The position numbers and the translations under genes were made by a program. From assembly GCF_006345805.1 (NCBI RefSeq), contig NC_043019.1:14941360-15005359 (forward strand): DNA of 64,000 nucleotides, written 5' to 3'. This stretch comes from Octopus sinensis (taxonomy: Eukaryota). Under the pieces are notes generated by a model. That model was not told the origin of the DNA, ran no database searches, and saw only the letters and a program-made list of their open reading frames with translations. Shown piece after piece: positions 410 to 33,525 of the stretch. Numbering within the stretch: the stretch's first letter is position 1; each line of letters starts with the position of its first letter.

Positions 410-705
410 GGGCAAATGACCATAGGATTGTACCTAGAAAGCTATCCTTCGAAACAAGTCCGGGCAAGGTGGTTTTATGGAAGACCAGCAGTCGTCCATG
501 GATACCACGCCACTGATGTTATCCAAGGGAAAGGCAAAGGGGCCGATACAGCTTGGCACCAGTGACGTCGCAACTCATTTCTACAGATGAGTGAACTGGA
601 GCAACGTGAAATAAAGTGTCTTGCTCAAGAACACAACACAGAGCTCGGTCCGGGAATCGAACTCACTATCTCATGATTGTGAGCCTGACACTAATCACTG
701 AGCCA
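410..705 (-). mobile_element. tRNA-derived SINE (family also at 14050-14382 and, partially, 6040-6200, 28200-28350, 37920-38050)
   Basis: The minus strand starts with a tRNA-like head (ggctcagtgattagtg...gttcgattcccggacc); the body is shared among the copies. Confidence 0.85.
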
Positions 706-3700: not shown

Positions 3701-3726
3701 CACACACACATTCATATATATATGTG

Positions 3727-3955
3727 AAGGCGGTGAGCTGGCAGAAACGTTAGCACGCCGGGCGAAATGCATAGCCGTATTTCGTCTGCCGTTACGTTCT
3801 GGGTTCAAATTCCGCCCTGGTCGACTTTGCCTTTCATCCTTTCGGGGTCGATAAATTAAGTACCAGTTACGCACTGGGGTCGATATAATCGACTTAATCA
3901 GTTTGTCTGTCCTTGTTTGTTCCCTCTGTGTTTGGCCCCTTGTGGGTAGTAAAGA
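3727..3955 (+). mobile_element. SINE with Nin/Deu-like central domain (many copies, e.g. 17090-17370 minus, 33760-34060, 43136-43347, 54425-54822)
   Basis: tRNA-like head plus gtcgactttgcctttcatcctttcggggtcgataaattaagtacc, resembling the Deu/Nin SINE core. Confidence 0.82.
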
Positions 3956-5012
3956 TATACATTCATGTATATATATTCTTGCATGTATATGTATACTGTA
4001 ACACATTTAAATCAAAGCCAAGAGATTGGCGAGTAGACAGATAAAAGCGCAAACACACGGACACACAGACACACAGACACACGGACACACAGACACACAC
4101 GCACCTTTATGCATGAACATGAAAAGAAAACAAAAAAAAAATTGTAAAAACTGTGCCATTTTTTGTGTTTCTTTAAAACAATGACAACGATTAAAAAATG
4201 CAAAGAATTCAATCCTGCATTCACGAGTTTTGTTCTGGGAACAATATGAACCACACGAGTGTTGAGACAATACCAATATGGACGATACGACTATTGTTTT
4301 TATTCAACATGGTCGTTGACACGTGGTTTTTTTTATGGTAATTTTCAGAAATGGCCGACATGTTTATTGTCGACCATTATTCAAGTATGGAAGACAACAA
4401 CGAATACTGGAATAATTTCAGCGAAGATGAAAACACGAAGGTTGTTTTTGTTTTTTGTACGAACATCATGTTATGGCTGCCTCATGTGTTTTGGCAGATT
4501 GTAAAATGGCCGATACGAATTAACGAACGTTTACAGCAGCCATATTGAAAACGTCATTTAATCTCTAAACATGTTATCCCGTATGTTTTCGTTTAGAGAT
4601 GTCTAATAAATATATATTTGAACGAAAATATATGTTCACTGTACTCTGAGGATATTTGTCACTTATTTCTAACCCAAAATACTTCGTTTATGATGTTATT
4701 CCTGTTTTCTATTATTAACTATCAGTAACCAGAATTTCTGTCTGTAACTTATTAATAAATTATAAACTAATCAAAACTAATTTGTGTACTTATTCTTCCT
4801 TATTAACAGATTCAAAGTAAATAATTAAAAATGATATTTTTTGCATGGAAATTGAAAAAAATGTTTATGTTAAGAGGTTACGTTCGAAAATTGTAGATGT
4901 GTGGTATGGATTTATTTTTTATTTATTGAGTCTAGAGCAAGGGACAATGTTCCTGCTCTTTCCAGGTCCTTCAAGACTAGTTAGCTTGAAGCCCTTAATG
5001 TTCTGTTTAGAC

Positions 5013-5343
5013 CAGGGGTTCTTAACCATTTTTGACCTATGGATCCTCTTTGATCACCGTTTAACTCTGGTGGATCCCATACCATTCGATGCTTAAAAGC
5101 TAGTTTTATATTTCTATTTTGTTTTTCACCTGTTTACTTGTATTGGCTTGCAATAGTAATTTCTGAAGAAGCATGTTCCAAGGACCGGGGACATGAACTA
5201 TGTAAAATTTTAGAGAAAAAACTCGTTTCTTGTAATAAATATATGTAAAGCAAAATGTTTTCATGGACCGTAGATCCCCAATATGCAATTTTGCTAGGCT
5301 GAACCGCCATAAATCTTATATGGACCTCAGCTGAGAAACACTG
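5013..5343. mobile_element. hAT (Charlie-like) MITE with 8-bp TSD
   Basis: Ends CAGGGGTTCTTAAC / cagctgagaaacactg; flanks GTTTAGAC (5005-5012) and GTTTGGAC (5344-5351). Confidence 0.8.
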
Positions 5344-5354
5344 GTTTGGACTCG

Positions 5355-5770
5355 CAGGTCAACAACTGCAGAAGGGATATGGGATGGGAGAAAATTCCAG
5401 AGAGACGATCTAGTGAGAAGATGGTATTAGCTATAGTGGTCAGTGCAAAGCTGAGGGGTTTTGATGCACCAAATGTGACGAGAGGTGGAAAGACGATTAG
5501 GACAGGAATGTCTGAGCGGTTGGGGTACAAAAACAACCGGCCCTGCAGAAGGGAGCCATTAGAGTTAGCCGTTGAAAAGAGAGAGGAAATAGCGCACTTG
5601 TGGGTCAGAGGTTGGAGGGCTTTAACTTGTGACCGAAATGCCAGAGTCTGGAGAAAGGTACACTGCCTATAATCTTTCCATGTCCCCCAGGACTGATAAG
5701 TTTGATGACATTAATGTCATGCTTAGACTGATACAGAACAACTGCAAGAGAGAAAATCCCAGCGGGACGG
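5355..5770 (-). mobile_element. Degenerate CR1/L2/Jockey-group LINE 3' fragment (copy 1)
   Basis: Minus-strand frames give LQPLTHK and an ...SLWNFLP-like segment; similar to the 6190-6430 copy. Confidence 0.6.
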
Positions 5771-5789
5771 CTTTTTGTCTTCTTGTCTT

Positions 5790-5995
5790 GCTTTGTGACG
5801 GCGTTCACCCAGGGCGGGTTGAGCCGGCTTCTTCTCTGATCCTGACGGCATCACGGTCCTGTGCGAGGTCACTGGAGATAGCGAGTCATTCGCGGCTCCA
5901 TCTGCGCAGACCGACCACCTGCGGACCTGAGATTTCGGAGAGGTCCTCCTTTATCGTCGTTGCCCAGGTCTTCAGCTGGCCTTATGTGGGGAAGG
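5790..5995 (-). mobile_element. RTE-clade LINE 3' terminal remnant
   Basis: The minus strand reads QLKTWATTIKEDLSEISGPQVVGLRRWSRE*LAISSDLAQDRD...AGSTRPG*, a typical RTE C-terminus. Confidence 0.75.
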
Positions 5996-6189
5996 ACTAG
6001 GCATAACGGTTAGTGCAGTGCTGAGAGGATTTGACGTAGAGGTGCGTGGTTAGGTTGTTGGACTCATGATCGTGAGATTGTGGTTTCGATTCCTCGACCG
6101 GGCGATGCATTGTTTTCTTGAGCAAAACACTTCATTTCACGTTGCTCCAGGTCACTAAAAAATGAGTAACCCTGCGATGGACCGGCACC

Positions 6190-6430
6190 CCGTCCAGGTG
6201 CGGATTTTATACGCCATGGAACGACTCGGAAATGTACCTTTTACATTGAGAGGATTTGATGTACCAAATATGACAAGAAGTGGAAGGATGAGTGGGACGG
6301 GGTCGTATCTGAGTGGGTGGGGGAGGGTACAAGGACAACCATCTCCGAAAAAGAGAGCCACTATAGTTAGAGATAGCCATAGAAAATTAAAGAGGGTAAA
6401 CGGTACACTTGTGGGCCAGAGGCTGGAGGA
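6190..6430 (-). mobile_element. Degenerate CR1/L2/Jockey-group LINE 3' fragment (copy 2)
   Basis: Minus-strand frames give VLQPLAHK...IFYGY...PPPPTQIRPRPTHP, resembling the LQPLSHRR...FYRY...PPPL.RPR.TR motif. Confidence 0.6.
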
Positions 6431-7349
6431 CTTCAGTTAGCGACCGAATTGCCAATCAGTTGAGTGTCTCTTCTCATGATGCAGATCAAGATGTTTTTGG
6501 GGGTTGCAGTAGTATTATCCTAGACGTAGGAGTAATACATCTCTATGGGGCCTCATTTGAAATTAGCAGCTCTTGGGAGTTGAATCATGCGATAAATGTT
6601 AACACGTTCGAATTTGACTAACTTTAACAATTTGAATAAATCCAAGCAAAATGGTGATATTTCACTAAAAACCAAGCATTGACCACAGGTCTGTAATTGT
6701 AAAGCTCTGACCTTTCAACGCGGAGAAAGTAGCGGCTCGGCCTCGAAAAACTCCCTGGTCTCCGAGCCATACGTAACTCTACTGAAAAAAAAGTTGTTCC
6801 AGAGATACTTTGGGGGAACCTCATTTCGGCCGCTGATATTTGATGTGGTTAGAAAGCTGCGGGTAAGGATCGTAAGACAGATTCCTTAAGCTGCACCAAA
6901 CGGCAGAAAATCTTGTGAGAAGGCCACGAGTGAGAAAACTGGATAATATCCAGTTTCAGTCGGCTACGCCTGGGAATCGATCAGGATAGTATAATGACGG
7001 TTGTATCTGGGACTTTTCCTCTACAACTCTTCAAAGAATAGGGGACGGCGAAAATGGATAAAAGAACGGGTGGATAGGCCAAACAATAAGAACAGTGGCT
7101 CTTTTTTTCTTAACTTCTCCGATAAGGAGCAACATGAACGCTCACGCATTCTTTCAATAAATCTCAGAATTGCTAAGATGAAAATTATTTACAAAAAAAT
7201 GTTGCAGCAGGAATAACAGGAAAAAGTAAATCATTGTCATTTTTCTCCAAGAGTGGAATGTCTCCCTTACACCATAATCAAGAAAAAAACGACAAATACC
7301 GTTTTTTATTGAATTAACATTATAGAAACATGTATTCAATCACACATTA

Positions 7350-7381
<32 letters not shown>

Positions 7382-7644
7382 ATATATATCGTTGGCATTT
7401 TGTTAAACTGTCGTATATCCAAAATTGGCCAAACGCGTTTTTTTTTCAAAATCTATTTTTGTTTGTAGTAACCGGATCTTTTGGTTAAACTATCGTATCT
7501 CCAGCTGCTTCAGGCGCCAAAATATCAAAAATTGTCAAAGTGTAATACAACAGTTTTGCTATGGAATGGTGAAACTATTTTCATTTTCTGAAAAAGCAGC
7601 GTTTTGGACTTACGACACTTTTGCATAATAGCAGCGACATTATA

Positions 7645-7785
7645 TAAGGTTGACCCAAAAGTTCGTAGAAAGTCTTGGAAAATAATGGTTTTTATTTTGA
7701 GGAATAATTTTTGTTGTTTTTGTTAGTACTTGGCGAGTAAAAATTCAATTTTCGCAAGTGTTTACGAACTTTTGGGACAACCTAA
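7645..7785. mobile_element. Tc1/mariner MITE
   Basis: TIRs aggttgacccaaaagttcgta / tacgaacttttgggacaacct in a TA context. Confidence 0.8.
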
Positions 7786-8009
7786 TATGTGTGTGTGTGT
7801 GTGTGTAGTATATATATATATATCTATATTTATGTTTTTGTGTGTGTGTGTGGTGTATATATATATATATATGTGTATGTGTGGTTGTGTGTATATATAT
7901 ATATGGTGTGTGTGTGTGTGTGTGTGATATATATATATATATATATATGTGTGTGTTGTGTGTATATATATATATGGTGTGTGTGTGTGGTTGGTGTATA
8001 TATATATGT

Positions 8010-8052
<43 letters not shown>

Positions 8053-8114
8053 GTGTGTGTGTGTTGTGTGTGTGTGTATATACACACACACACATACACA
8101 AGATGACTGACAGT

Positions 8115-8340
8115 CCGATGGCACGGGCTGGAATCAAAATACAGCCGCCGCCCCAGTGAACCCACCTTATTAATTGTCGACGGCCCAGCAAGTGCTGACC
8201 GTGATGGTAACGGGGAACCAGGGTTCGATTCTAGAGAGCGGGACTTGCGAAGCCGTTCTCTCATTCCAAAGAATGCAGCAGGCATGGAAATTACCCACTC
8301 CTGGTAAGGTGGGAGATTCGAAACGAAAGACAACGATGAA
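8115..8340 (+). pseudogene. Decayed 18S rRNA fragment (5' domain)
   Basis: ggtaacggggaaccagggttcgattctagagag...gcagcaggcatggaaattacccactcc aligns by eye to the conserved 18S GGTAACGGGGAATCAGGGTTCGATTCCGGAGAG...GCAGCAGGCGCGCAAATTACCCACTCC. It carries many substitutions and has no flanking rDNA. Confidence 0.88.
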
Positions 8341-8676
8341 GAACTCCATTGAAACTCTGGGCTCGATCAAAAATGTGTACACTTCAAATCACCACCATTT
8401 ATACTCAACAGTTACGTTACGATAAAGACGAGAAGTTTCAGAGAAGCCGACGAGGGCAACCAAGCTGAACTTCGAAAGGCTCTGCACCCCTCACTTCTTG
8501 TAAAAGTTTAGTGTGTATACACACACACACACCGTGCATAGCACAAACATTTGACCACTATCAACAAAACCTTTGCGCAAGAGAGTTCATGTATACATAC
8601 ACACACGCCGCGCGCGCGCGGTGTGTGTGGGTCGCTGGTGTGGTGTGTGTGTGTGTGTGTGTGTGTGTGTGGTGTG

Positions 8677-8731
<55 letters not shown>

Positions 8732-10028
8732 GCGTGGCGTATGTGTATGTATACAGTATATGTACATTATACATAACACCAGCGTGTGTAAGTATATATA
8801 TATATATAATATACGCGTGGCGTATGTGTATGTATATATGTACATGTACATTATACATACACACAGCGTGTGTATATATATATATTTTATCATAGGTAAT
8901 CAAACGATGGTAAGACTGAGGCACACACACACTGTATTCTTTTATCATTTTGTTTGACATTTGACTATGGCCATGCTGGAGCTCCGCTTTAAAGGGTTTT
9001 AGTCGAAGAAATCGACCCCAGGACTTACTCTTTGTAAGCCCAATGCTTATTCTATCGGTCTCTTTCGCCGAACCACTAAGTTACGGGGGACGTAAATGAA
9101 CCAGAGTGGATTGTCAAGCGATAGCGGGTGGTAAGGGGCAAACACAGACACACACAAATATATATAAGGCGGGGCTCCAGTATGACCGCAGTCAAATGAC
9201 AAACAAATAAAAGAATACGACGGGCTTCCTTCAGTTTCCATCTACCTAATCTACTCACAAGGCTTTGGTCGGCCCGTGGCTATAGTAGAAGACACCTGCC
9301 CAAGATGTCACGCAATGAAACCGAACTTAAAACCGTGTTGTTAGGAAGGTAGCTTCTTACCACACAGCCGCACACGACGGGGGTTCTTTTAATTTCCGTC
9401 TACCACATTCGGCCACGAGGCTTTGGTCGGTTCGAGGATAAAATAGAAGACACCCGGCCAAGGTATCACGGAGTGAGACCGAACTGGGAACCCTGTGGTT
9501 GGGAAGCAAACTTCTTACCACAGCCACGGCACCTTCCCATCCCAGGAACACACACTTCTCCCTTTCCCTCTCTCTTTCTTTCTATGTATCTACCTCCGTC
9601 TGCGTATTTATAATTATACAGACAAACATCAAATTAATTGGGACATAAATATTCTTTCTTTTACACAGGCGCAGGAGTGGCTGTGTGGTACAAAGCTTGC
9701 TCCCCAACCACATGGTTCTAGGTTCAGTCCCTCTGCGTGGCACCTTGGGAAAATGTCTTCTACTATAGCCTTATGAATGTATTTGGTTGATGGGAACTGA
9801 ATGAAGCCTGTCGTGTGTGTGTATATATATATATATACGCGTGTGTGTCCTCACCATCGCTTGACAACGATGTTGGTGTATTTACGTCCCCGTAACCTAG
9901 CGGTTCGGCAAAAGACACCGATAGAATACATACTGGTCTTACAAAGAATAAGTCTTGGGGTCGATATATATATATTCTTTTGTTTCAGTCATTTGACTGC
10001 GACAATGCTGGAGCCTGTCGTATATACA

Positions 10029-10066
<38 letters not shown>

Positions 10067-10941
10067 GGTCCATCACTACTAGACAACCGGTGTTGGTGTG
10101 TTTACATCCCGTAACTTAGCAGTTCGGTAAAAGACTGATAGAATGAGTATGCTGTTTAAGAAATAAGTTCTGGGGTCGATTTATTCGACTTAAAATTCGA
10201 GACGGGGTCCCAATATGACCGCAGTCTAATGACCAAAACAGGTAAAAGTTAAAAGCTTATAATTTAAAAAAAAAACGCAAAACAAAAACGAAAAACAACA
10301 ACAAAACACCTGTTTTTTTTTGTTTCGGACATGTTACTGTGAATCTAACAGTGTAATCGGATAAAATGTAAAAAAAAGCACAGTTAAAGTTAATTTAGGT
10401 AACCAAATACCAACACACTAACCTTGAATGTTTAGAATTCTCACAAAACTGAATAGAAGCGGTTAAATAGCGTTTGATGAACTCCGTAAAAACTGTTGGA
10501 GAAAATAAAAAAGTCAGATATTTTTACAGAGGTTCAGCGCTTGAATAACGAACCAGTTTAATGCGGTGACGTCGCTGAACAATAGAAGCTTTGTTGCTCC
10601 TCTACATACGACTGGTTATTTATCTTGTTGATCTGTATTGTTGAAATGTATGATATACAGAGCACGGCACACATACATACATACACAAGTCTATACGAAC
10701 ACAAACATACACACGCAATAGATATATATACGTTCAACGCATACACACACACATACACACATATTCAAACATACACGTTACGGCTTAGGTGGTCGAAACT
10801 TCGGAGTCACTGTCAACGCAGTTCTTGTTAGAGAATAATAAACTTGTACTGTACCAAATAAAGTAATCGTTCAATTAAATGTAAAATTGTTTTTATTATA
10901 ACATAAAAACACACACAATATATATGTGTGTGTGTGTGTGT

Positions 10942-11120
10942 CGCCATGATAGATCGTTAGCCACTATACATTTTTTCTCTCCTTGTTTTTTCTGTGTCCC
11001 TTTCTGTAGAAGAGCGTAGGCTCGAAACGTTAGGGACTTTTTCTATTCCTGAGCGTTATACTAATATATCTGTTTGTTTTGTACACCGCCTGTCTTCATT
11101 TTGTGTTTTTCGTGAACTCA
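10942..11120 (+). mobile_element. Penelope-like element terminal fragment with hammerhead-like motif (copy 1)
   Basis: gtccctttCTGTAGAagagcgtaggctcGAAACgttaggg; near-identical copies at 15860-16048 and 39158-39340. Confidence 0.65.
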
Positions 11121-12849
11121 CACACACACACACACATATATATATAAAGGGGTTTGTATGATTGTATATAGAGGGATATATATTATTCAAAGGAATTCAA
11201 CTCTGTTTTTTTTAATGTTTTATTTATATTCTTTATAATATTAATGTAGAATATAGAATATATAGATAAATAATATATATATTGTAAAATGAAATGAAGT
11301 ATTGATTGTGTATTGAATAGATGAAATATTGAATATCAAATATTAAGGGACTAGTATTACTTTCTGCATTAAGCAGTCTCAGGTTCCAGGATTGGACAGG
11401 AATGTTTCAACTGTTTCAAGAATATATATATATTTATATTATATATATATATATATATATATAGAATATAATATATATAACACACGTGTGTGTGTGACAA
11501 AATGGTGAAAAACGATGTATGTCTTGTGAATAGGGGGTTGAACTTAAACGGTAGCTAAGTCCAGAGGCTGAAATTAGTGGCAAACTCAACGCCAAATGCT
11601 AACGAATCATTGACTAATTTTACATTTCATTAACTTGATAGTATCAATGGGGCTGACTGGCAAAATCACCCTGAAGTATTTAGTTGCACACTAAATCGGG
11701 AGGTTCGGTTTTTCAAAAGGTGTGAAACTCCCTGTTAGCCACTATTTTTCCAAGGTCTACTCCGATCCGGAGTAGCTGGGACACGTTAAGGACCCAGCAA
11801 TGCATTAATTAGCATTCCTGCATCGTGAGGAGGCAGGAAATACATGGAGTTATCTGAGTTCGTGACCCTTGTTGCACCTGACCAATACGAGCTTGAAAGA
11901 TGTGGGAGTGGGCCTGGCTCTGCACGAACCATACCGATTGTGCAGATTTGTTCGGCAAACCAAAACATCGGCACCAACACCGCCACACTTTCTTCATAAG
12001 CCAAGCGGACAAAACTGAATTGAGGACAGTTAGGCTGTGCAGCTGTCACCTGGTGAACCCCCACCGTCATTCGTCGAAGCGACGAGAGTTCACCACAGCA
12101 CCACTACCACAGCACCACCACCACACCACTACCACCATCTTTAAGCCTTGAGTTCAAGTTCAACGGGGCCTTGTTATTTTCCGGGGTCAACAGATATCAA
12201 TTGAATGCCGAGATCGATATAATCGGCGGCCCTACTTCCAGAGGTGTAGCATGGAACGTGCAATATGTGCGAACCACACCGGGAAGCCGTTATATATCAC
12301 AGCATCGACCGGACTAACAAATATTGTTATACATCGCTGGTCACTATGCGCCGGCATCGTTATAGCTTTCGAATGATGCCACCCCACTGGCTAAGTGTGC
12401 AGGCCAACATATCCCTGATCGGAGGGCTATTTTGCAGCCGAGTTATTCTATTCTGCGGATGAAATCGCTGACACAAACTGACTGTACGATAACTTTATAA
12501 TGTCTGATAATCAATTAACTGCCAAATTTTTGTGAATTAATATTTTTTCGCTTTGCCAGGTGTCTTAAGATTTAAGATATGTAGTATTTAAATTTTCTTC
12601 ATATGTGAATTATAATTTGGAAATTATGATAAATTTTTCGAAAAGTACCAAATGGGGATCGCTGAAAAAAAAAAAAAAATCCTTTTCTATTCAATTGAAA
12701 TAATAAACATTTTAGCTTTTTTGAAACTATAGTATCAAATGTGAATGTGTATGAAATGATATAGATAGGAAATGTGAAACAAAATGTGTATGAATGATAT
12801 AGATAGGAAATGTGGAAAAAAATGTGAAAGAAGTTTCAAAACAGTCGAT

Positions 12850-12949
12850 NNNNNNNNNNNNNNNNNNNNNNNNNNNNNNNNNNNNNNNNNNNNNNNNNNN
12901 NNNNNNNNNNNNNNNNNNNNNNNNNNNNNNNNNNNNNNNNNNNNNNNNN
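12850..12949. other. Assembly gap (100 N)
   Basis: Run of N. Confidence 1.
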
Positions 12950-12959
12950 TTAGCCCCTT

Positions 12960-13410
12960 GTGGGTAGCAAGAAATAGGTATTTCGTCAGCCGCTACGTTC
13001 TGAGTTCAAATACCGCCAAGATCGACGTTGCCTTTCATCCTTTGGAGGTCGATAAATTAAGTACCAGTTGCGTACTGGAGTCGATCTCATCGACTGGCCC
13101 CCTCCCCCAAAATTTAGGTCCTTGTGCCTAGAGTGGAAAAAAATATTTAAACCTTTCGGGGTCGATAAATAAAATGCTATTTGCGTACTGGGATCGATCT
13201 AATCGACTGGCTCACTCCTCAAAATTTTCGGGCTCTGTACCTAGAGTAGAAAAGAATATTTAAACCTTTCGGGGTAGATAAATCAAGTACCAGTTGCGTA
13301 CTGGGGTCGATCTAATCGACTGGCCCCCTCCTCCAAAATTTCGGGCCTTGTGCTTAGAATAAAAAAAGAAATTTAAACTTTTCGGAGTCGATAAATTAAG
13401 TACCAGTTTA
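12960..13410 (+). repeat. Head-to-tail array of about 120-bp SINE 3' halves
   Basis: Three to four iterations of ctttcggggtcgataaat...gtcgatctaatcgactggccccctc...gggccttgtgcctagagtagaaaagaatatttaaac. Confidence 0.8.
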
Positions 13411-14605
13411 TCTTATTACATCGTATTCTGTTTCATTTTATTTTATTTTATTTTTCGAATCTATCTTAATCTTATTTCATTTCATTTTTTGTTTCTAATC
13501 TGTGATCATATTTTATATTCTTAGCTGTGCTATTTCATAACATCATAAACTACTCCAAGAGTTTACCCTCCTTCCCATTCGACCTTTCCTTAGCATATCG
13601 TTCCCGCCCATCGTTTCTCATTGTTAAGATTATGTAAGCAATAATTTTACAAGTAAATTTCTTTTTTCTTCTTCTTGCGATTCTGATAATTCGCCAGACG
13701 AAACAACAGTAAATCTTAATCTGGAGTTATCTCACCGGCATTGTTGAAATCATTTGTACATTTTGCTCCACGCCCATCATTAGGCCCCGGTTGAAAACCG
13801 CTGCATAGAACCTACTAATAAAATACATTGCAGTCTTTCTTTTGGTTCTTTATGTTGTGAGTTCAAATCCCACCTGGGTCAACTTTGACTTTCATTCTTC
13901 CGAGTCGTTGTTGTTTTGTTGTTGCTTAGCGCCAGTTCAAGCCTAACCGAGCAGATTTATAATCAAAGGGGTGCCAGCTAAAACCAATCTATTTTTATTT
14001 TTATTATATTTTATTTTATTTTCCTCTCACTTCAAAATAAAAGGAAAGAGTAAAGACCCTCTTCGGTGATGACTGACCATGGGATTGCACCTGGAAAGTT
14101 CCCCTCCGAGGCACGTGTATAGGCAGGGTTGTTTATGGAAGACCAGTAGTCACCCATGCATACCAGCCTCTCCGTGCCACCAGTGTTATCCAAGGGAAAG
14201 GCAAAGGGGCCGATACAGCTTGGCACCAGTGACGTCACAACTCATTTCTACTGCCGAGTGAACTGGAGCAACGTGGAATAAAGTGTCTCGCCCAAGAACT
14301 CAAGACAGCCCGATCCGGGATTCGAACTCACTACCTCATGTGTATTAGTCCGATGCTCTAACCACTGAGCCATGCGCCTTCACAATATAAACGTAATGGT
14401 TCAATATGAAACGTTGAATTGACGGATTTGTTAGAGAGTCGGGGGCCAAATGCCTCCCACCGCGGTATTTCTTGCAGCGTTTAAATGGTATTTGGTTTGC
14501 TTGTTTCTCGGTTGTAGAATGGTGACTGGGGAGGATGGGGTGGGGGAGAAGGGTGGAATATATTGCCTATCTGTCATTAACCTTACCTTATCACCCGACC
14601 TTTTA

Positions 14606-14650
14606 GAAGTTAAGACCTTTTAGAAGTTAAGACCTTTTAGCAGTTAAGTC
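14606..14650. repeat. 17-bp tandem repeat (gaccttttagaagttaa) x ~3
   Basis: Visible directly. Confidence 0.85.
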
Positions 14651-15716
14651 TTGGCACCGCATCTTAAACTAAAGGACATACGGGACAAACTGATATAAAA
14701 GAGATGGGGTGGAGGGGAACGAAATGTCTTTGAACTCAGATCTGTCTAATCACTGCTGACAGAAGGTGGAACGGTGAAAAATGCCATCGTCGTCATCGCC
14801 GTCATCATCGACGTCATAGTCGTCGTCATCATCATCATCATCATCATCGTCGTCATCATCATCATCATCATCATCGTCGTCGTCGTCGTCATCTTTTATC
14901 TGTTTCTTATCTGAACGCCATTCTCACATATCGTTTTTATCCTGGTACTTGCTTCAGTCACCACGGCCATGCTGGGGCACCGCCTTCAAAGAACTTTGTA
15001 GTTGAATGACTCGACCTCTGTATTTATTTGAAAAAAAAATTTTAAGCTTGGTACTCATTCTATCGGTGTCTTTTGACGAATCGCCAAGTTGCGGGGACGT
15101 AAACACACCAGCACCGATTGCAAAGCAATGGTGGAGGGACAAACACACACACGCAAACTCACACACGCGCACACACACAGACACACACACACACACACAT
15201 ATATATACACACACACATATATATGTCTTTTTTATATCCGTTTGTCCCGATGTCCTTTATTTTAAGATGTCATTCCAGAAGATCTTGCTGCTGTTTCTAA
15301 AAGGTCAAGCGATAAGACACAGTTAATGAAAGATAGGGGAATGCATCTCTCACACCTCGGCCCCTAGCCCATCACTCCACAAACCAACCAGCAAACCAAA
15401 TGCCATCGAAATTCTTAGAGTCTCACAATCAGTAAAAGATTTGTTTTCAGCAGTTGATCAATTATACCAAATATCACACACTTACACACACATACAAACA
15501 TACACGCACACACATACACATATACACACACTTACGCACGCACATACGCACACATACACGCACACACACGTACTCACCTTCATATTAACTATGAAATATA
15601 TGTATGTATTCATGTGTCTGTAAATACCCATATATATGTATGTATTTATGTATGTATATGTATGCTTGTGGTGTGTGAGTGTATATATATGTGGTGTGTA
15701 TGTATATATGTATGTA

Positions 15717-15749
<33 letters not shown>

Positions 15750-15859
15750 CTTATTATATATATTATATATATATATATATAACAGGGAGAAAGAAAGGAG
15801 CAGAGTCAGTGAGTGAGTGAGAGAAAGAGAGAGAGAATTATATATATATATATATATAG

Positions 15860-16048
15860 TCGCCATGATAGATCGTTAGCCACTACACACATTTTTTTTC
15901 TCTCCTTGTTTTTTTTTTTTGTCCCTTTCTGTAGAAGAGCGTAGGCTCGAAACATAAAAGACTTTTTCTATTCCTGAGCGTTATACTAATACATCTGTTT
16001 GTTTTCTACACCACCTGTCTTCGTCTTTTGTTTTTTTCGTAAACTCTC
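15860..16048 (+). mobile_element. Penelope-like element terminal fragment (copy 2)
   Basis: Same sequence family as 10942-11120. Confidence 0.65.
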
Positions 16049-16050
16049 CC

Positions 16051-16081
<31 letters not shown>

Positions 16082-16200
16082 CGTGTGTGTATGTATATGT
16101 ATGCATTTATATGTATGCACGTATGCGTGCGTGTATGCACGAATGTATATATTTATACATCCTTCTCTTTATCTAAACGCCAACTCTTTTTACTTTCCAG

Positions 16201-16308
16201 TCCAGTTACCTCGCCAGATCCAAACAACAGTCTTGGAGGACCAAAGGCAGTCTCAATGACTATTTCATGATTCCATATCAGTTCCCTTTCTACACGGCAT
16301 TTGTTGAG
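16201..16308 (+). CDS. DUF885 gene exon ([36 protein letters not shown])
   Basis: Acceptor tactttccag, donor GAG|gtaagt, 108 nt, phase 0-0. Confidence 0.9.
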
Positions 16309-16763
16309 GTAAGTCATTCTTCTACATAAACATCAGTGTGCCGTATATACGCTCTGGGTTCAAATCCAGCCGTTTGATCCACCGAGATTGCCTTTGTCTC
16401 TCACCAAACCGGGATGTGATAAATTATAATAATAACTCATGGACGGTGATTTGGGGGGAAATGATGAAGTATTAGCCAATGAAATCTGGCGGTAATTGTT
16501 CTGGATATTTACGTTCTGTGTTCAAATCTTATAGAGGTGGTGAAATTGCTGTTTAATGTTCTGAGGTCAGTAGAATAAAATAGCAGCTCAGACGCATGAA
16601 TTGGCCGCCTAAGGACATTTATCAGTGTCGGGGTTAAACAGCCTGGGGTACCATGTATACTCAGTCAACCATTGCGCAAAATTACTCTGCAGAAAACAAG
16701 AGTCTTAGTAGTCGACTGACACAATTAGCGGGCAAGCATGCGTATATATATATATATATATAT

Positions 16764-16803
<40 letters not shown>

Positions 16804-17898
16804 CTATATATATATATATATATAGATATATATATATAGTAGAAATATGTTACGAAAAGAAAATATAAAATACACGTGGATATGTAAGGGTAAAATAAGA
16901 AAAATCAACGAAAATGCACATTGCAAATAAAAAAAAAGGCTATTTATGACAGGTAACGACAAATATAAAATATATACATTTTGATTGACTGAGGTAGTAA
17001 TACGAGTCATATATATATATATAATATATATATATATACATACGTACTTATTTAATCAATCTCGAAAGGATATAAAAGCCAAAGTCGACCTCGGCGGAAT
17101 TTGAACTCAGAATGTAAAGACAGGCGAAATACCTATTTCTTTACTACCCACAAGGGGCTAAACACAGAGAGGACAAACAGGGACTGACAAACGGATTAAG
17201 TCGATTACATCGACCCCCGTATGCAACAAGTACTTAATTTATCAACCCCGAAAGGATGAAAGGCAAAGTCGACCTCGGCGGAATTTGAACTCAGACCGTA
17301 ACGGCAGACGAAATACCGCTAAACATTGTGCCCCACACAGTAACGATTCTGCCGGCTCATCGCCGTCCTTGAGTCGCTTATATTAAGACATAAACGTATG
17401 AACATTATTTACATTATTTACATTTGACGGATATTTGTCCTCATCTTGTTTTTTGTTAACACATATCCGTCAAATGTAAATAAAGTAAATAATGTAAACA
17501 ATTCCTCATCTCTTAAATGTAGAACTGTATAAACGTATGATTTCTATTTCAGGGTTGGGGCCTTTACTCGGAGTTCCTTGGAGAAGAGATGGGGATTTAC
17601 AAAACAGATTATGACCGGTAGGAATAAAAGGGTTCTTATTTCTGTCTTTTAACTTCCATCTTTTACTTGTTCTTTTGTCAATGGACTGAGGCCATGCTGG
17701 GGCACTGCTTGGAAATGTTTGCTCGAACAAAGCGACCCCAGTACTTATGGAGTTTTGTTTTTAAGTTTGGTATTTATTCTAAAGGTCTCTTTTTGCCGAA
17801 CTTCTAAGTTACAAGGACGTAAGCAAACACCGGTTGTCAAGCGGTGCGTGGAACAAAGACAAACATGCCACACACATCCACACATACACATACAAACA

Positions 17899-17933
<35 letters not shown>

Positions 17934-20695
17934 GACGGGCTTCCACACAGTCACCGTCTACCAAATTTACTCTTGAGGCATTAGTCTGCCAAGCTCTATA
18001 GTAGACGACACTTTCTGAGTGTGCCACGCAATGACATTGAACTCGGAACCACAAGAATACAAAATGAGCTCCTTAACCACGCAGCTACGTCTTCGCCTAT
18101 TAAGTACTGGAGTTAAGTTGTTAAAATAAAAAACCCTTCAAGGCAATGCCCCAGTATGGGCGCAGACCAATGAGTGAAACAAGTAAAAGATTTTAAAAAA
18201 TGGTTTATTTGGTTTGTTAAAAAACGAAAATCATGTTCTCATATTTCATTATAATTTTTTTGTTGTAGGATCGGTCGTTATGCGTTTGAGCTTTTGCGAG
18301 CTTATCGTCTGGTCATTGATACAGGAATCCATGCAAAACAGTGAGTATTCAAAGGTTTCCATCTCAGTTCCTTGGGATTTATAGGTTTAAAGAAGTCAGC
18401 TTGTGATAATAAATCGCAAGGACAGACATACATAAGCGCAGGAGTGGCTGTGTGGTAAGTAGCTTGCTTACCAACTACATGGTTCCGGGTTCAGTCCCAC
18501 TGCGTGGCACCTTGGGCAAGTGTTTTCTACTATAGCCTTGGACCGACCAGAGCCTTGTGAGTGGATTTGGTGGACAGAAACTGGAAGAAGCCCGTCGTAT
18601 ATATGTATATATTTATATGTGTGTGTGTGTGTGTGTGTCTGTGTGTGTGTGTATGTATGTATGTATGTATGTATATGTTTGTGTGTCTGTGTTTTTATAA
18701 AATAAAAAAATAAATAGGCGCATGTAGTTGGTAACCACATGGTTCCGGGTTCAGTCCCACTGCATGGCACCTTGGGCAAGTGTTTTCTACTATAGCCTCG
18801 GGCTGACTAAAGCCTTGTGAGTGAATTTGATTGACAGAACTGAAAGAAGCCCGTCGTATATATGTATATATGTATATATATATATATAATATCTATATAT
18901 ATATATATATAATATATATATGTACGTGGGTGTGTATGTTTGTGTGTCTGTGTTTGTCCCCTCACCATCACTTGAAAACCGATGTTGGTGTGTTTATTCC
19001 CCGTAACTTGGCGGTTTGGCAAAGGAGAGACCGATAGAATAAGTACTCGGCTTACGAGGAAGGGCGAATGGAAGCGCGTGTGTCGCGTTACTCTCGAGCA
19101 ACAATGCCGTCCAGGTTCGACCTCGAGCGACTGCATCACAACCAAGGCATTCTATAGGGGCTTAGCGATGGGGAGGTACGACGACGATCTCGGGGCGAAC
19201 TTGGGCGTCGACGAGGAATACCTGACCCGCTTGTGCAAGACAACTTTCGGGCCGGGACCTATGGACAACTTCCAGAGATCCCTGGCCTGTCAGTGCTACC
19301 GAGAAGCGCTACCCGTTCGGAATAAGCTCTGCAGACATGGCTCGAGAAACACGAGGCCGACCTGCCCGAGATGCGGTCAGAGCGACGAAACTGTCTCTCT
19401 CTCTCTTCCTCATCCACTTGTTCTTTTTCTTTTAACCTCTCAGAATGACTCGACAGCATGGAATCGATCTCCTGACCAACTTCACAGGCCTCAGTGAGAA
19501 GCAAGCATCAATTGAGATTGACCGCTACATTACCATCCCGGGTCAGGCCTGTGCTTATAAATTCGGAGAATTGAAGATTCGAGAACTGCGAAGTAAAGCT
19601 GAGAAAGCCTTAGGTACAGTGATGGATGCGTTCTTCCATATTTTTTCTTTACATTGTCGTTCATATTTTTAAGGGTGTTTTTGTTTAACCCACCACTAGG
19701 GTTTACAATGTTAATGGCCTTTATAATTTAGTTCCAGGTTAGTTCCCATCGACCAGATTTATGACCAAAGAGGTTCCAGCCTTGACGATCTCATCTGTGC
19801 GCGTGTGTGTGCGTGTGGTACTTTCAAATCATGACTTTTGAGAAAGCGAATGGACTATAAAATTGTTACGCATTTCCATATATCATGACAGTATTACATA
19901 ACATAGTTTGGATTACATAACATTATATGAAATATATAGAATAAAGGATATCGTCCGTTCACAGAAACAATTGTAGTGTCAATTTGATGTCTCCTTTTCT
20001 AATTTAAAACATTACTTTTATAATTCACTCAACTGAATCATACTTTGGAGTTCTGTCGGGCTCTGAAGACGGTGCTGTATTTCAAAAGGATGAAACGCTT
20101 GCATTGTTCTATTTAATGGAGCCGCCTGAAACGGCCGCATTGCATTAATACCATGACATCCTTGTTACTTATATACTGTAATCAAAAGACATATGATGAC
20201 ATGCCATAAATAAAATTACATATACCACAGATTATGAACATTAAAAAGATATTTAAAGCAAAATTTCTACATATCTATATATACATACATAGATACATAC
20301 ATACGTACATATATATATATATATATATACATACGTACATATCTCTCTATATATACATATATATCTCTCTCTGTACATATGAATGTATGTATATATAAGT
20401 ATATATATTTATTTATAATCATAGGTCGATCATGTGAACTTAACCCATGTATATTTTCAATGTCTTTTTTTATCTCCTTTTTTCTCTTCCCAGTTTATCC
20501 TAGTTTCTTTTATTAGTGTCTGAAGAAAGACTATATCCGAAACGTTAAAGCTTTTTATTCCTTCCTTGAGTGTCAGTCTGATAATATTCACTTTGAACGT
20601 CTCTTGTACGCATTTTCAATTGCTAGTTGCCTTCTATATACGTATATATGTGTGATGTGTGGGTATGTATACACACACACACACACACATATATA

Positions 20696-20739
<44 letters not shown>

Positions 20740-21059
20740 TACATACATACTTACATACATAATATATATATATACACACACACATATATATGCATACACA
20801 TATATATATATATACATAAATATATATGCATACATAAATATATGTTTTTTCCTCTTTTGTAGGTGATAAATTTGACTTGAAGGACTTCCACGCCGCTGTC
20901 CTGGAGAACGGACGTGTCCCTCTGGATATTCTGGAGCAAATAGTGGATAACATGATAGAAAGTAAAAAGGCACAGAAGAACCATGCCAGCACACTTAGTC
21001 AGATTCCGTCCTTGTTGTTTTTAGTCAGTTCACGTCTATTATACAGTTATTGTTATTGA
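16201..21059 (+). CDS. DUF885-family protein (PF05960, putative zinc metallopeptidase-like), last five coding exons, 5'-partial
   Basis: Exons 16201-16308, 17553-17617, 18269-18340, 19444-19613 and 20863-21059 splice GT-AG in frame (612 nt). They give ...[25 protein letters not shown]...[21 protein letters not shown]...[27 protein letters not shown]...[28 protein letters not shown], the characteristic DUF885 C-terminal motif series. Confidence 0.93.
17553..17617 (+). CDS. DUF885 gene exon ([21 protein letters not shown])
   Basis: Acceptor ctatttcag, donor CG|gtagga, 65 nt, phase 0-2; completes the EGW motif. Confidence 0.93.
18269..18340 (+). CDS. DUF885 gene exon ([23 protein letters not shown])
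   Basis: Acceptor ttgttgtag, donor CA|gtgagt, 72 nt, phase 2-2. Confidence 0.93.
18436..18600 (+). mobile_element. High-copy octopus tRNA-derived SINE (dozens of copies on both strands, e.g. 18715-18860, 22380-22510, 33530-33680, 52000-52390, 57700-58095)
   Basis: gcaggagtggctgtgtggtaagtagcttgc...ggttccgggttcagtcccactgcgtggcaccttgggcaag recurs across the window. Confidence 0.9.
19046..19405 (+). mobile_element. Tx1/L1-clade LINE ORF2 C-terminal fragment (zf-RVT-like zinc knuckle)
   Basis: Open, CpG-rich frame ...[24 protein letters not shown]...[13 protein letters not shown], matching the L1/Tx1 ORF2 C-terminal CxxC...ET motif. Confidence 0.8.
19444..19613 (+). CDS. DUF885 gene exon ([10 protein letters not shown]...[30 protein letters not shown])
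   Basis: Acceptor aacctctcag, donor G|gtacag, 170 nt, phase 2-1. Confidence 0.95.
20863..21059 (+). CDS. DUF885 gene terminal coding exon ([10 protein letters not shown]...LLYSYCY*)
   Basis: Acceptor cttttgtag; TGA at 21057-21059; AATAAA about 30 nt downstream (~21091). Confidence 0.94.
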
Positions 21060-21087: not shown

Positions 21088-21100
21088 ATAATAAAAAAAA
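21088..21100 (+). promoter_or_regulatory. Candidate polyadenylation signal of the DUF885 gene
   Basis: aataataaaa lies just after the stop codon. It runs into a genomic A-tract, so it could also be an internal-priming site. Confidence 0.4.
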
Positions 21101-23127
21101 AATTCTCTTTAAACTGAGTGTCCTGTTGCTGTGTTATCTCTTTTATATATTATGGACATTCATGTATTACATAAATGTACTGACACAGTCGGACTTGTTT
21201 TTAAGTGACTTAAACAGTGTTGAAAGTGGAGCAGCCATGAAAATGTTCTAGGGTCTCTAGGAAAGACAGATGATATTCTTAGGTCAGAAACCTTGCTGCA
21301 GAGAAGATTCTGGTAAAAGCATCCACGATTTAAATGGTCGTGATAATTTAGAATTTAGGCTCCCACCCAAGGACAACAAGGGCCCTTCTGACGAGCTTTC
21401 ATATAATTTCCGCCTACAAAATTTTTCTCACAGTTTGGCATATAAATATACATAGAATGTATGTAGAATTAATGAGACTTGTAAAATGTATCAACATATA
21501 GGCACATATATGTGGTAAGAATTTTGATTCCCTATACTATGGTTCCCAGGTTCAGTCCCACTGCAAGGCACCTTGGGCAAGTGTCTTCTACTATAGCCTC
21601 TGGCTTACCAAAACCTTGTCAGTTGATTTCGTAGACGGAAACTGAAAGAAGCTTGTTGTATACATACATACCTACATATATCACCGTGACCGACCAGGCT
21701 ATCAGATGTTGCTACACATCGCTGGTCACAATGCACTTCGCACTGTTTTAGCCTTCAAATGACACAACCCCACTGGCTAAGTGAGCAGGCCTCATATATA
21801 TATATATATATAGATAGATAAATAGATAGATGGGGTAGGGACAAACACAGATAGATGCATACATACACACATATATATGTGTGTAAGTGTGTGTGTGTAT
21901 GTATATATATATATATGTACGTATGTATGTATGTATATATATATATATTCTTTTATTTGTTTCAGCCATCTGACTGCAGCCATGCTGGAGCACCGCCTTT
22001 AGTTGAACAAATCGACCCCAGAACTTATTCTTTGTAAGCCTAGTACTTATTCTATCGGTCTCTTTTGCTGAACCACTAAGTTACCGGGATGTAAAGATAA
22101 CAGCATTAGTTGTCAAGCGATGGTGGGGGACAAACAGACACACAAATACACACACACACACACATATATATCTTCTTTCAGTTTATTTCTTTATAGCCCA
22201 CAAGGGGATAAATATAGAGGGGACAAACAAGGACAAAGGGATTGAGTCGATTACATCATCTTCAGTGCGTAACTGGTACTTAATTTATCGACCCCAAAAG
22301 GATGAAAGGCAAAGTCGACTTTGGTGGAATTTGAACTTTTGCCTGGCATGCAACGTTTCTGCCAGCTCGCCACCTTCTTTCAGTTTCTGTCTACCAAATC
22401 CACTCACAAGGTTTTGGTTGGCCTGAGGTTATAGTAGAAGACACTTGGCCAAGGTGCCATGCAGTGTGGGACTGAACCCAGAAGCATGTGGTTGGTAAAG
22501 CAAGCTACTTACCACACAGCCACTCCTGTGCATGCATATATATAATAGGGATTAAAAGAGCCAGGCTGATATCAATAGAAGATTCAGTTCTAAACAGATT
22601 TGGTTAACTATATTAAACAATCAGGCACCAGCAAATACACATCCGTAGATCTAAATATCCTTTACAATTTCAAGACATTCTTATAGAAAAATATCACCAA
22701 AATTAATATATCTGAAAATACCTGTTAACATGTTTTCCAGGTGATTCAAAATTTAACAAATTTTGGAAAATGTGATAATGTATTTTCTGATATAATAATT
22801 TCAATATTTTCAATATTCTCTACACCTTAATATGTTGATAGAACAGAAACAGTTGTCAGCTTTGTAAGGTAAATTCTACTATTAAAGACATGATCTTTTT
22901 CTATCCATAGCTTTGTTATATATAATTTAATCCATAGTCATTGGTTACAAAACAGCCATAGGTGAAACAAAATATATTTTGTCAGACTAATGTTTATGGT
23001 TTAAATATTTTATTCATTCTCAGACTTGTCTTTGAGTTCTTTATACTAAATGGTTGGACATAGATTCTTTTGAATTTGTCTCCCCTTGAATATGGGAATA
23101 TGTGCATCTTTGTGTCAAGAAAAAGTA

Positions 23128-30529: not shown

Positions 30530-30806
30530 TAATATTGGGGCGTATAAATCCACGATGGAAAAAAGTGGGTGCTAGAACACACAAGAATCCTCAACACTTC
30601 TCCATTTAACACAGAAAATGGACTTGTTTGTTGGTTTAAAAACAATACCATGAAATTATAGCTCTTAAATCTAATGGGAAGGAGTGAGTGGGGAGGTTGG
30701 TGTATTCGGTTAGCACACTTTTCACGTAAATAAGAGATGTGGGTTCGATTCCCATGCGTACTAACACCCACTTTTTTCTGTCAAGGGCTTTTATGCCCCA
30801 ATATTA
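30530..30806. mobile_element. Tc1/mariner-type MITE with an internal tRNA-like (A box/B box) segment
   Basis: TIRs taatattggggcgtataaatcc / gggcttttatgccccaatatta; subterminal IRs aaaaaagtgggtg / cacccacttttt; internal ggtgtattcggttagcac...gtgggttcgattcccat. Confidence 0.7.
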
Positions 30807-32461: not shown

Positions 32462-33493
32462 ACTAATTTATAATTATATAAATAATTATATTAAAGGGTT
32501 CGAACTGACCACACCAACATGCTAGAAATAGATGCCAAATGGCTGGCCACTTCATAAAATCATTTCTATATAAAGAAAATGTGTGTGTGTGTGTGTGTAT
32601 GTGTGTGTGTATGTGTGTGTGTGTATGCTGGCAATGAGCTAGATGGTTCAACCGGAGCTGGCAAGCTAGAAGGCTGCACCAGACTCCAGTCTGCCTTGAC
32701 AGCCTACTTTCTAGGGTTGGATGCCCTTCCTGACGCCAACCACTCCGAGAGTGTAAACAGGTGCTTTTACGTGCCACCAGCACGGCAAAATTAAAATATA
32801 AGAGAAAGCAGAAGAAGAAAATAGAATTCACGAGATTCTTTATTAATTATTACAATCAGTTCAACCCATTGTGCATCATGCATCAGTGGCTTGCAGGTGA
32901 GACGCTGCACAAACAGTTGTGGTGCATCACTGGTGCAGGTGAGTCTTGTCAGGTGACTTTGCTTTTTAATCTCTGTTTCGCTTATTTCAACTAGAGCTTA
33001 CTTTGGTTGTTGTCGGTAGCCACTTGTGTGCATGACAAACTTGAGTTAAAAGGAAGGAAGAACACTTCTCGTATAAGTAACAAACTGACTTACAAAGAAT
33101 CAAAAAATAATTCAAGCATCAAAATGAATCGGTGAATCAAAGAATATGCCCAACACTGATGACGAAATGTAATAGAATAGAATCATGAAACAAGAAAAAT
33201 CGCCAAAGATAGAACAAAATACAAAACACAATTCGACATTCAAACTGCCTCGAGGTACCTCTTACTACAAGGTGTATTCTTTTGCTCTCTTGCTCTTTTA
33301 CTTGTTTCAGTCATTTGACTGTGGCCATGCTGGAGCACCGCCTTTAGTCGAGCAAACCGACCCCAGGACTTATTCTTTGCAAGCCTGGTACTTATTCTAT
33401 GAGTCTCTTTTGCCGAACTGCTAAGTTACGGGGACGTAAACACACCAGCATCGGTTGTCAAGCGATGTTGGGGGGACAGACACAGACACACAA

Positions 33494-33525
<32 letters not shown>

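Follow-up and report, generated by a model that had tools for sequence, protein, structure and literature searches.

Positions 16201-21059 of a 64,000-nucleotide stretch of the Octopus sinensis genome (CM016881.1:14941360-15005359, the whole of which is called the window here) are the 3′ end of the O. sinensis orthologue of a 617-residue, secretory-type protein of the DUF885 family, and hold the last five of its roughly 17-18 coding exons. The explanation that best fits the data as a whole, and that we consider likely, is an intact gene for a secretory DUF885 protein, possibly a lipid-anchored and enzyme-like one, that has been split by an assembly gap. The gene has already been annotated (LOC115223697) and was published in 2018 as horizontally acquired; it is an ordinary, functionally uncharacterised gene.

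The five exons, all on the plus strand, are each preceded by AG, with GT after every internal one, and add up to 612 nt that translate into 203 residues, with no internal stop and a C terminus reading SRLLYSYCY. A sequence-only reading of this DNA had proposed that five exons join in frame into a 203-residue DUF885 protein, and splicing and translation bear out the join and its motifs; the family assignment is also real, but the 203 residues are only residues 415-617 of a 617-residue protein. The first exon, 16201-16308, encodes residues 415-450 (SSYLARSK...YTAFVE) and starts with the residue right after HEAVPGHHFQ, whose exon lies outside the window; it is 100% identical to positions 79610-79717 of the gap-free O. 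vulgaris locus (L005) and has a 108-nt counterpart in Argonauta. The second, 17553-17617, completes the invariant EGW..Y.E motif, so that AFVEGWGLYSE (16297-17573) spans the first junction, and the third, 18269-18340, carries the invariant R..R.LV.DTG.H block, with RLVIDTGIH at 18306-18332; both are identified by splice sites, family conservation, the Argonauta and O. vulgaris genes, and complementary DNA (cDNA). The fourth, 19444-19613, recognized by splice sites and conservation, ends in AEKALG and contains an N-glycosylation sequon (NFT, 19478-19486), a third motif of 13 residues (19523-19561), and both octopod-specific Trp replacements, W to M and W to I. The terminal exon in its long form, 20863-21059, supported by its splice site and by a tail frame that is open in relatives, encodes the end of the DUF885 domain (FDLKDFH, 20871-20891), a 32-residue tail, and a TGA stop. 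An AATAAA polyadenylation signal follows on the plus strand at 21090-21095, 31 nt past the stop of this tail-bearing form, and O. bimaculoides has an A-rich stretch after its stop that is comparable to the O. sinensis polyadenylation region.

The hidden Markov model (HMM) search against PF05960 that the sequence-only reading had named as a check gives a clear match to the 203-residue translation (E 1.4e-60, 206.9 bits against a cut-off of 32.4), which covers residues 29-165 and is confined to the last quarter of the profile (positions 394-531 of 532). The rest of the profile is found in the O. vulgaris orthologues, CAI9739243.1 (617 residues) and CAI9739242.1 (593 residues): the shorter isoform matches DUF885 at E 1.4e-112 (378.5 bits) over profile positions 16-531, a region that it shares with the 617-residue form. 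CAI9739243.1, with 2 mismatches to the 203-residue window translation, consists of a signal-peptide-like N terminus, a full DUF885 domain with HEAVPGHH at 405-412, the SSYLARSK segment that follows, and the tail shared with the window; the Argonauta hians orthologue, of 615 residues, has HEGIPGHH. In O. vulgaris, the coding sequence extends across ~81 kb, with the HExxPGHH exon at L005 74257-74328, 5.3 kb upstream of the counterpart of 16201.

The public annotation describes something much smaller. LOC115223697 is represented at NCBI by XP_029650231.2, a 181-residue model that begins at an internal Met (16267) and is 100% identical to the window translation; the O. bimaculoides models, XP_014790670.1 (181 residues) and XP_014790670.2 (224 residues), belong to an orthologue that is ~93% identical. 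Taken as they stand, these Gnomon models describe a stand-alone, 5′-truncated gene or a decaying relic of 181-224 residues with neither a catalytic motif nor a signal peptide, and the 16 kb upstream of the first exon agree with them inasmuch as they hold no HExxPGHH exon. Neither that exon nor any other upstream DUF885 exon was found in the 64-kb window by a six-frame regular-expression search allowing ≤2 substitutions, by tblastn with 10 and then 125 homologues and with the O. vulgaris and Argonauta proteins, or by a custom N-terminal HMM, and a listing of open reading frames in 1-16200 contains only low-complexity and repeat frames. However, the window has a run of 100 N at 12850-12949, a contig break that cuts the gene, and N gaps lie exactly where the missing exons are expected in both the O. 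sinensis and the O. bimaculoides assemblies. Collinearity with O. vulgaris resumes at 12950, the first base past the gap, which corresponds to L005 75275; the contig thus ends 947 bp downstream of the O. vulgaris position of the HExxPGHH exon, which is why that exon is absent from the window. Positions 1-12849, on the far side of the gap, match nothing in the 75 kb of upstream O. vulgaris locus or in the O. bimaculoides upstream region, and represent either a scaffold join that skipped the true neighbouring contigs or a large lineage-specific insertion.

Pieces of the missing part can be seen elsewhere. O. bimaculoides has two intact, canonically spliced DUF885 exons, encoding EYLPATRED...RIKKRVKA and IMNKQNFKGS...LQNA, 8.6-9.9 kb upstream of the counterpart of 16201, and N gaps follow them at L002 2896-3013 and 4646-7625; the extra N terminus of the 224-residue model arises only because the model reads through the acceptor region. 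In O. sinensis, residues 1 to ~180 are encoded on a 42-kb unplaced scaffold, VCDQ01004698.1, by exons annotated as the partial gene LOC115231234; the exons for residues ~180-414 were not located. The Argonauta protein is labelled after a third O. sinensis locus name, LOC115219656, which may be this missing middle fragment on another scaffold. A 5′-truncated relic was the first reading of the locus, and the O. bimaculoides upstream exons, the N gaps, and the O. vulgaris collinearity led us to reject it. The full-length proteins had been hard to see: queries of ~200 residues returned no match longer than ~360 residues and no cephalopods beyond the truncated models, as though the search favoured similar lengths, and it was a 369-residue chimeric probe (O. 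bimaculoides upstream exons, a bivalve middle, and the 203 window residues) that retrieved them, after which the O. vulgaris locus was placed by means of the 617-residue isoform. What weighs against an intact gene is that the HExxPGHH exon of O. sinensis itself is unseen, its existence being deduced from O. vulgaris and Argonauta. The sequence-only reading had made its claim depend on this exon, and the exon is indeed missing from the window, but as an artefact of the assembly, the motif being present in both of those relatives. The gene looks like a stump of 181-203 residues because of the contig break in the scaffold, and the stump is an artefact of assembly and annotation.

Expression and selection point in the same direction. 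Liu et al. (2018, PMC6011040, Table 3) amplified a 331-bp product of the O. bimaculoides gene from hepatopancreas cDNA and sequenced it by the Sanger method. Their primers sit in the exons orthologous to 16201-16308 and 19444-19613, and the product, which has 327 of 332 positions in common with the O. bimaculoides exons once spliced, crosses junctions 1, 2, and 3 of the four. Genomic DNA contains none of those three junctions, so the predicted splicing does take place and the gene is expressed, and the sequence-only reading was right both to expect junction-spanning evidence and to call this a genuine nuclear animal gene, given the cDNA, the DUF885 match, and a shared exon structure: in exon lengths and GT-AG sites, the window gene agrees with its counterparts in O. 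bimaculoides, O. vulgaris, and Argonauta hians, the Argonauta exons of 108, 65, 72, and 170 nt and their splice sites being identical to those of O. sinensis. The ratio of nonsynonymous to synonymous substitution rates (dN/dS) between O. sinensis and Argonauta is 0.08 over 171 domain codons, with dS saturated, and 0.30 in the tail. Between O. sinensis and O. vulgaris it is 0.18, with 1.0% divergence in exons and 4.8% in introns; divergence from O. bimaculoides is 4.1% in exons and 8.2% in introns. A truncated or decaying gene can draw on the dN/dS of 0.66 between O. sinensis and O. bimaculoides, which counts against constraint and which, with 7 synonymous and 17 non-synonymous changes (24 in all, too small a number for interpretation), is by itself indistinguishable from neutrality, as well as on the loss of conserved Trp residues. 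But the same Trp replacements occur in Argonauta, and are therefore old and maintained rather than signs of decay, and the comparison with Argonauta shows strong constraint. We conclude that octopods maintain an intact gene under purifying selection, and regard the stand-alone truncated gene or relic as very improbable.

The part of the domain encoded in the window, its C-terminal lobe, keeps every DUF885 column that is invariant across a 60-sequence alignment: EGW.LY.E, R..RLV.DTG.H, E..RY...PGQA..YK, and the later R, F, and FH. Numbered along the 617-residue protein, the retained motif residues are H405, E406, P409, G410, H411, H412, and Q414 in the upstream part, followed by E450, G451, W452, Y455, E457, R482, R485, D489, T490, G491, H493, E520, R523, Y524, Q530, A531, Y534, K535, R545, F556, and H562. 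A broader reference, the 95 columns that are at least 85% conserved in 90 non-cephalopod sequences, gives a less uniform picture. The window-encoded part keeps 53 of its 58 such columns, and over the whole protein O. vulgaris keeps 78 of the 95 and Argonauta 75, that is, 17-20 are changed, against a mean of 3.4 and a maximum of 9 per non-cephalopod sequence. Both octopods have W497 replaced by M and P353 by E, each invariant elsewhere, together with A502 to G and W527 to I or V. The Trp that follows the DTGxH block is 100% conserved in the 90 relatives and is Met in both the window and Argonauta, while the Trp of RYITWPGQ is 86% conserved and has become Ile in the window and Val in Argonauta. 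The sequence-only reading had noted substitutions at usually aromatic or Cys positions; the loss of aromatics stands (W to I, to which W to M is added), but the supposed Cys of RAYRL is merely a variable column, with C, V, S, or N in relatives. Because so many conserved positions have changed relative to the family elsewhere, and with two near-invariant Trp residues and an invariant Pro lost, the activity of the octopod protein may be altered.

What the domain does is suggested by its fold and motifs. An AlphaFold2 model of the O. vulgaris protein, built from the 60-sequence alignment, is nearly all-helical and confident (predicted local distance difference test 90.8, predicted template modelling score 0.90). 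Foldseek against the PDB gives convincing matches only to the solved bacterial members of the family, 3O0Y, a Colwellia lipoprotein (E 5e-26, template modelling score (TM) 0.82), 3IUK from Arthrobacter (TM 0.76), and 3U24, a Shewanella lipoprotein (TM 0.66); in sequence, the window fragment matches 3O0Y at E 1.8e-37, and the family profile does so at E 9e-132. The comparison with peptidase structures that the sequence-only reading had called for thus recovers the fold of the DUF885 crystal structures, with ACE matched only weakly. We posit that H405, E406, H411, and H412, from the upstream exon, would combine with E450 of the EGW motif and other invariant residues encoded in the window to form a metal-dependent hydrolytic site, probably that of a peptidase, an assignment to which we give even odds. 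Pfam places DUF885 in the clan Peptidase_MA (PMC12572635), FFAS links a spider DUF885 protein to M32 carboxypeptidases (PMC7682650), and the invariant constellation of H, E, H, H, E, Y, and R has the look of a metallohydrolase site. Alternatively, the domain could be some other metal-dependent hydrolase or a non-catalytic binding protein, which seems to us possible but distinctly the weaker proposal. Several observations pull in this direction and count against a peptidase: we found no biochemical characterisation of any DUF885 protein in the literature; the motif is H-E-x-x-P-G-H-H and not HExxH, and in the model the helix ends at 406 and a new one starts at 411, so that a Pro-Gly break parts the two halves; no peptidase in the PDB is reached by the DUF885 family profile at E <= 10; and the Foldseek matches to the ACE N-domain and full-length ACE are weak (E 0.02-0.04, probability 0.72-0.80, TM 0.25-0.28). 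A zinc metallopeptidase is a reasonable mechanism to propose from the sequence, and we do not file the protein as a gluzincin, because its motif is HExxPGHH with a Pro-Gly helix break rather than HExxH. The M32 (Taq-type) carboxypeptidases and M2 (ACE) are likewise offered as functional analogues only: the analogy draws on the large, all-helical, two-lobed zinc-hydrolase-like fold suggested by the FFAS link and the weak ACE matches, but the octopus protein has no canonical HExxH and no significant sequence match or strong fold match to them, and membership is not claimed.

The two ends of the protein bear on where it would act. A signal peptide combined with a bare hydrophobic C-terminal end is the classical layout of a glycosylphosphatidylinositol (GPI) precursor, and candidates for both elements can be recognized here. 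The signal peptide that the sequence-only reading had named as a check is present in the O. vulgaris orthologue (maximum 10-residue Kyte-Doolittle hydropathy 2.16) and on the O. sinensis unplaced scaffold, where LOC115231234 begins with MLRFFQTALVLLFTTTAFIKG and continues with TEDTSS; the judgement was made by inspection and hydrophobicity only, and members of the wider clade have similarly signal-peptide-like N termini. The signal-peptide exon (L005 34303-34368; L004 11771-11836) has no ATG beside it in O. vulgaris, so the start codon must lie on a further upstream micro-exon, and the first three residues differ between models, MTT in O. vulgaris and MLR in O. sinensis. At the other end, the 32-residue extension (20961-21056, plus strand), a candidate GPI-attachment signal by hydrophobicity and rule-based comparison, has small residues (NHAS, 20979-20990), a candidate omega site at A-S-T, and a hydrophobic end (21009-21056). 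That this tail is genuine coding sequence, as had been supposed from the letters, is upheld by its conservation: its frame is open in O. bimaculoides, O. vulgaris, and Argonauta, where it reads ...SANNGVNSLTHTHTLPQTLFSLVLASLIQFYGY, the octopod tails are homologous to each other, and bivalves, abalone, whelks, a brachiopod, and others have equivalents. The octopus protein also has about 7 N-glycosylation sequons.

We propose that the protein would enter the endoplasmic reticulum by its N-terminal signal peptide and be N-glycosylated there, after which the C-terminal tail would be exchanged for a GPI anchor, so that the DUF885 domain, all-helical and resembling M32 carboxypeptidases, would come to lie on the outside of the plasma membrane. 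DPEP1 (membrane dipeptidase) and CPM (carboxypeptidase M), lipid-anchored enzymes that face the extracellular space, offer an analogy of topology, though they are not homologous. The case for anchoring is better for the clade than for the octopus. Under a crude, home-made set of GPI rules, with an arbitrary hydropathy cut-off of 2.0, 25 of 29 proteins of the lophotrochozoan clade described below pass, compared with 1 of 15 in a second animal clade and none of 46 from bacteria, and N-x-S/T sequons average 8.0, 2.8, and 1.6 per protein in the three groups. The best 10-residue Kyte-Doolittle values are 2.69 in Argonauta, 2.03 in O. bimaculoides, and 1.99 in O. sinensis, compared with 1.9-2.9 for four textbook GPI signals. 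Against anchoring in Octopus itself, its tail is the least hydrophobic of the clade, falls just under the cut-off in O. sinensis, and has one Arg within the hydrophobic stretch as well as several Ser and Tyr; because the tail is so weakly hydrophobic, contains an Arg, and sits at the threshold, we regard GPI anchoring of the Octopus protein, and with it the membrane-face location, as an evenly balanced prospect, and rate it higher for the clade as a whole.

The tail might instead not be a GPI signal at all, the protein being a soluble enzyme of the digestive-gland, saliva, or venom type, or one held by a short C-terminal membrane or retention peptide. The borderline, Arg-bearing octopus tail would suit this scenario, as would a Dreissena relative with a true transmembrane segment and a charged cytoplasmic tail, the occurrence of animal DUF885 proteins in a spider venom proteome and in snail venom-gland data, and the origin of the cDNA in the hepatopancreas, a secretory digestive organ. 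A tail-less isoform is moreover annotated in O. vulgaris and can be encoded in the window: an internal alternative donor in the last exon (GAAA/GTAAAA, 20961-20962, plus strand) spliced to 22842 gives exactly ...MIEKQKQLSAL and a stop, the end of the 593-residue O. vulgaris isoform, and the alternative 3′ coding exon, 22842-22867 on the plus strand, encodes (K)QKQLSAL, as in the annotation of CAI9739242.1, and is followed by a poly(A) signal at 22881. Its use in O. vulgaris and O. sinensis could yield a tail-less, presumably soluble, secreted form. The donor GT is, however, AT in O. bimaculoides, where an N gap covers the site corresponding to the extra exon, and is absent in Argonauta; because the donor is not conserved in either, the soluble isoform is either young or a product of annotation. 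Nor does a non-GPI role readily fit a tail whose frame and arrangement of small residues, spacer, and hydrophobic stretch, with no polar end, are kept from Argonauta to Octopus and in the great majority of the clade, or its pairing with a signal peptide. We therefore view a secretory protein with a tail of another kind as conceivable but doubtful, and retain GPI anchoring as the working proposal.

The history of the gene has been told differently. The O. bimaculoides orthologue, under the name 'UCP' (XP_014790670.1), is among 12 'HGT genes', that is, genes acquired by horizontal gene transfer (HGT), reported by Liu et al. (2018, PMC6011040), in whose tree it is nested among bacterial homologues. 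This protein is the direct orthologue of the window gene, published in its truncated form. Direct acquisition of the gene by an octopus or cephalopod from bacteria, as claimed for 'UCP', can also point to a family that is mostly bacterial and that has been listed as an HGT candidate in Dictyostelium, and to the identities of the 203-residue fragment, which are 55-63% with bacterial and metagenomic proteins and 47-58% with molluscs. But the sampling of PMC6011040 covered bacteria, protozoa, fungi, plants, and 7 vertebrates, with no invertebrate outgroups, and full-length homologues are found in bivalves, gastropods, a nemertean, a brachiopod, hemichordates, cnidarians, and chelicerates. In a neighbour-joining tree of 92 full-length sequences and 562 columns, the two cephalopods included fall, with 100% bootstrap and on a long branch, inside a lophotrochozoan clade of bivalves, Haliotis, Nucella, Solemya, Lingula, and Lineus (87%); cnidarians, a horseshoe crab, a hemichordate, and heterobranch gastropods form a second animal clade (56%), and animals are separated from the sampled bacteria and metagenomes at 100%. 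The ~17-18 spliceosomal introns and the synteny with a His_Phos_2 gene in three Octopus species are further obstacles to a direct transfer, and the high identity to bacteria is explained by the strongly conserved C-terminal lobe and the long cephalopod branch. The octopus-specific transfer claimed in 2018 is not supported, and we judge it extremely improbable. Judging from the tree, the gene goes back at least to the ancestor of lophotrochozoans and clusters with the DUF885 proteins of other animals, apart from the sampled bacteria. As for the ultimate origin of the animal genes, an ancient HGT and vertical descent with differential loss are left undecided by the neighbour-joining tree, because only the closest bacteria were sampled and no maximum-likelihood analysis was made.

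The clades differ in the architecture that surrounds the common domain. Members of the lophotrochozoan clade (Ruditapes LOC132748243, Crassostrea LOC111133419, Haliotis, Nucella, Lingula LOC106176736, and Argonauta) are built like the octopus gene: nearly all complete models have a hydrophobic N terminus, and the clade has a C-terminal extension of 40-50 residues with small residues and a bare hydrophobic end. The octopods depart from it in their long branch, in the tail, weakest in Octopus, and in W497M, W527I/V, and P353E. The second animal clade (Aplysia, Biomphalaria, Elysia, Ptychodera, Actinostola, and Limulus/Tachypleus) and a venom-associated DUF885 protein of the spider Physocyclus (PMC7682650) have the same domain with HE[GA]xPGHH and EGW, but this clade is paralogous, and its examined members are mostly without signal peptide or tail and have few sequons; they are therefore probably cytosolic. 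The bacterial proteins of solved structure have every invariant motif in common with the octopus protein and are only 21-24% identical to it overall; the octopus protein differs from them in its many exons, its eukaryotic signal peptide, its sequons, and a C-terminal tail where they have an N-terminal lipobox; no C-terminal extension is seen in bacteria. Many bacterial members are extracytoplasmic lipoproteins anchored through a lipid at the N terminus, as the names of 3O0Y and 3U24 and the Lutibacter N termini ending ..ISC indicate, and the N termini of the bacteria examined are lipoprotein-like. Lipid anchoring outside the cytoplasm may thus be a pattern that recurs in DUF885.

Elsewhere in the window, the neighbouring His_Phos_2 (histidine-phosphatase) gene runs from 24308 onward on the minus strand, encodes a product of ~650 residues, and lies tail to tail with the DUF885 gene, an arrangement conserved among O. 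sinensis, O. bimaculoides, and O. vulgaris. The first intron of the DUF885 gene contains a near-perfect hairpin of ~94 nt (17402-17495; RNA minimum free energy -42.6 kcal/mol over a 121-nt stretch, z = -9.7), which O. bimaculoides has at the corresponding position and the Argonauta locus lacks. Its arms occur a second time upstream of the gene's first exons (O. sinensis L004 5334-5456; O. vulgaris L005 28944-29066), so this is probably a small inverted-repeat element, resembling a miniature inverted-repeat transposable element, rather than a unique regulatory hairpin. A ~0.8-kb intron segment, 18576-19394, is common to O. sinensis and O. vulgaris and missing in O. bimaculoides; it is probably the 3′ end of a long interspersed nuclear element, is flanked by two copies of a repeat resembling a short interspersed nuclear element (~18440-18570 and ~18730-18860), and overlaps a GC-rich open frame (18982-19497) that continues into the acceptor of the exon at 19444 and has a sub-threshold zf-RVT match (E 0.07). 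An Rfam tRNA match at 30691-30763 on the plus strand (34.1 bits, E 0.002), not called by ARAGORN, is probably a tRNA-derived repeat or pseudo-tRNA in an intron of the neighbouring gene. Dispersed repeats of ~230-420 bp and 84-93% identity (17044-17359, 33281-34043, 52000-52394, 54421-54823, and 57702-58100) are present in several copies, both here and at the loci of O. vulgaris and O. bimaculoides, and the introns contain long (TA)n, (CA)n, and (CATA)n microsatellites.

What this analysis adds is a repaired gene model, a rebuttal of octopus-specific HGT, a clade defined by a signal peptide and a GPI-like tail, and a set of octopod-specific substitutions. Its practical value is mainly corrective, and it does not reveal a new kind of system: LOC115223697, LOC115231234, and LOC106884006, in O. 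sinensis and O. bimaculoides, are fragments of one gene for a 617-residue protein split by gaps, and the published claim of bacterial transfer rests on a truncated model and absent invertebrate outgroups. A larger picture, which we put forward tentatively and from sequence comparison, is that lophotrochozoans may hold previously undescribed GPI-anchored, glycosylated DUF885 ecto-hydrolases, a C-terminally lipid-anchored counterpart of the bacterial N-terminal lipoproteins; that octopods would have remodelled the C-terminal lobe, altering two near-invariant Trp residues and an invariant Pro; and that O. vulgaris and O. sinensis might have gained, with the alternative 3′ exon, a switch between anchored and secreted forms in the digestive gland. 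The DUF885 family comprises thousands of bacterial and several hundred animal proteins and has three crystal structures, and a clade with a signal peptide, glycosylation sites, a GPI-like tail, and digestive-gland expression gives it a concrete location and an expressible target for assigning a function.

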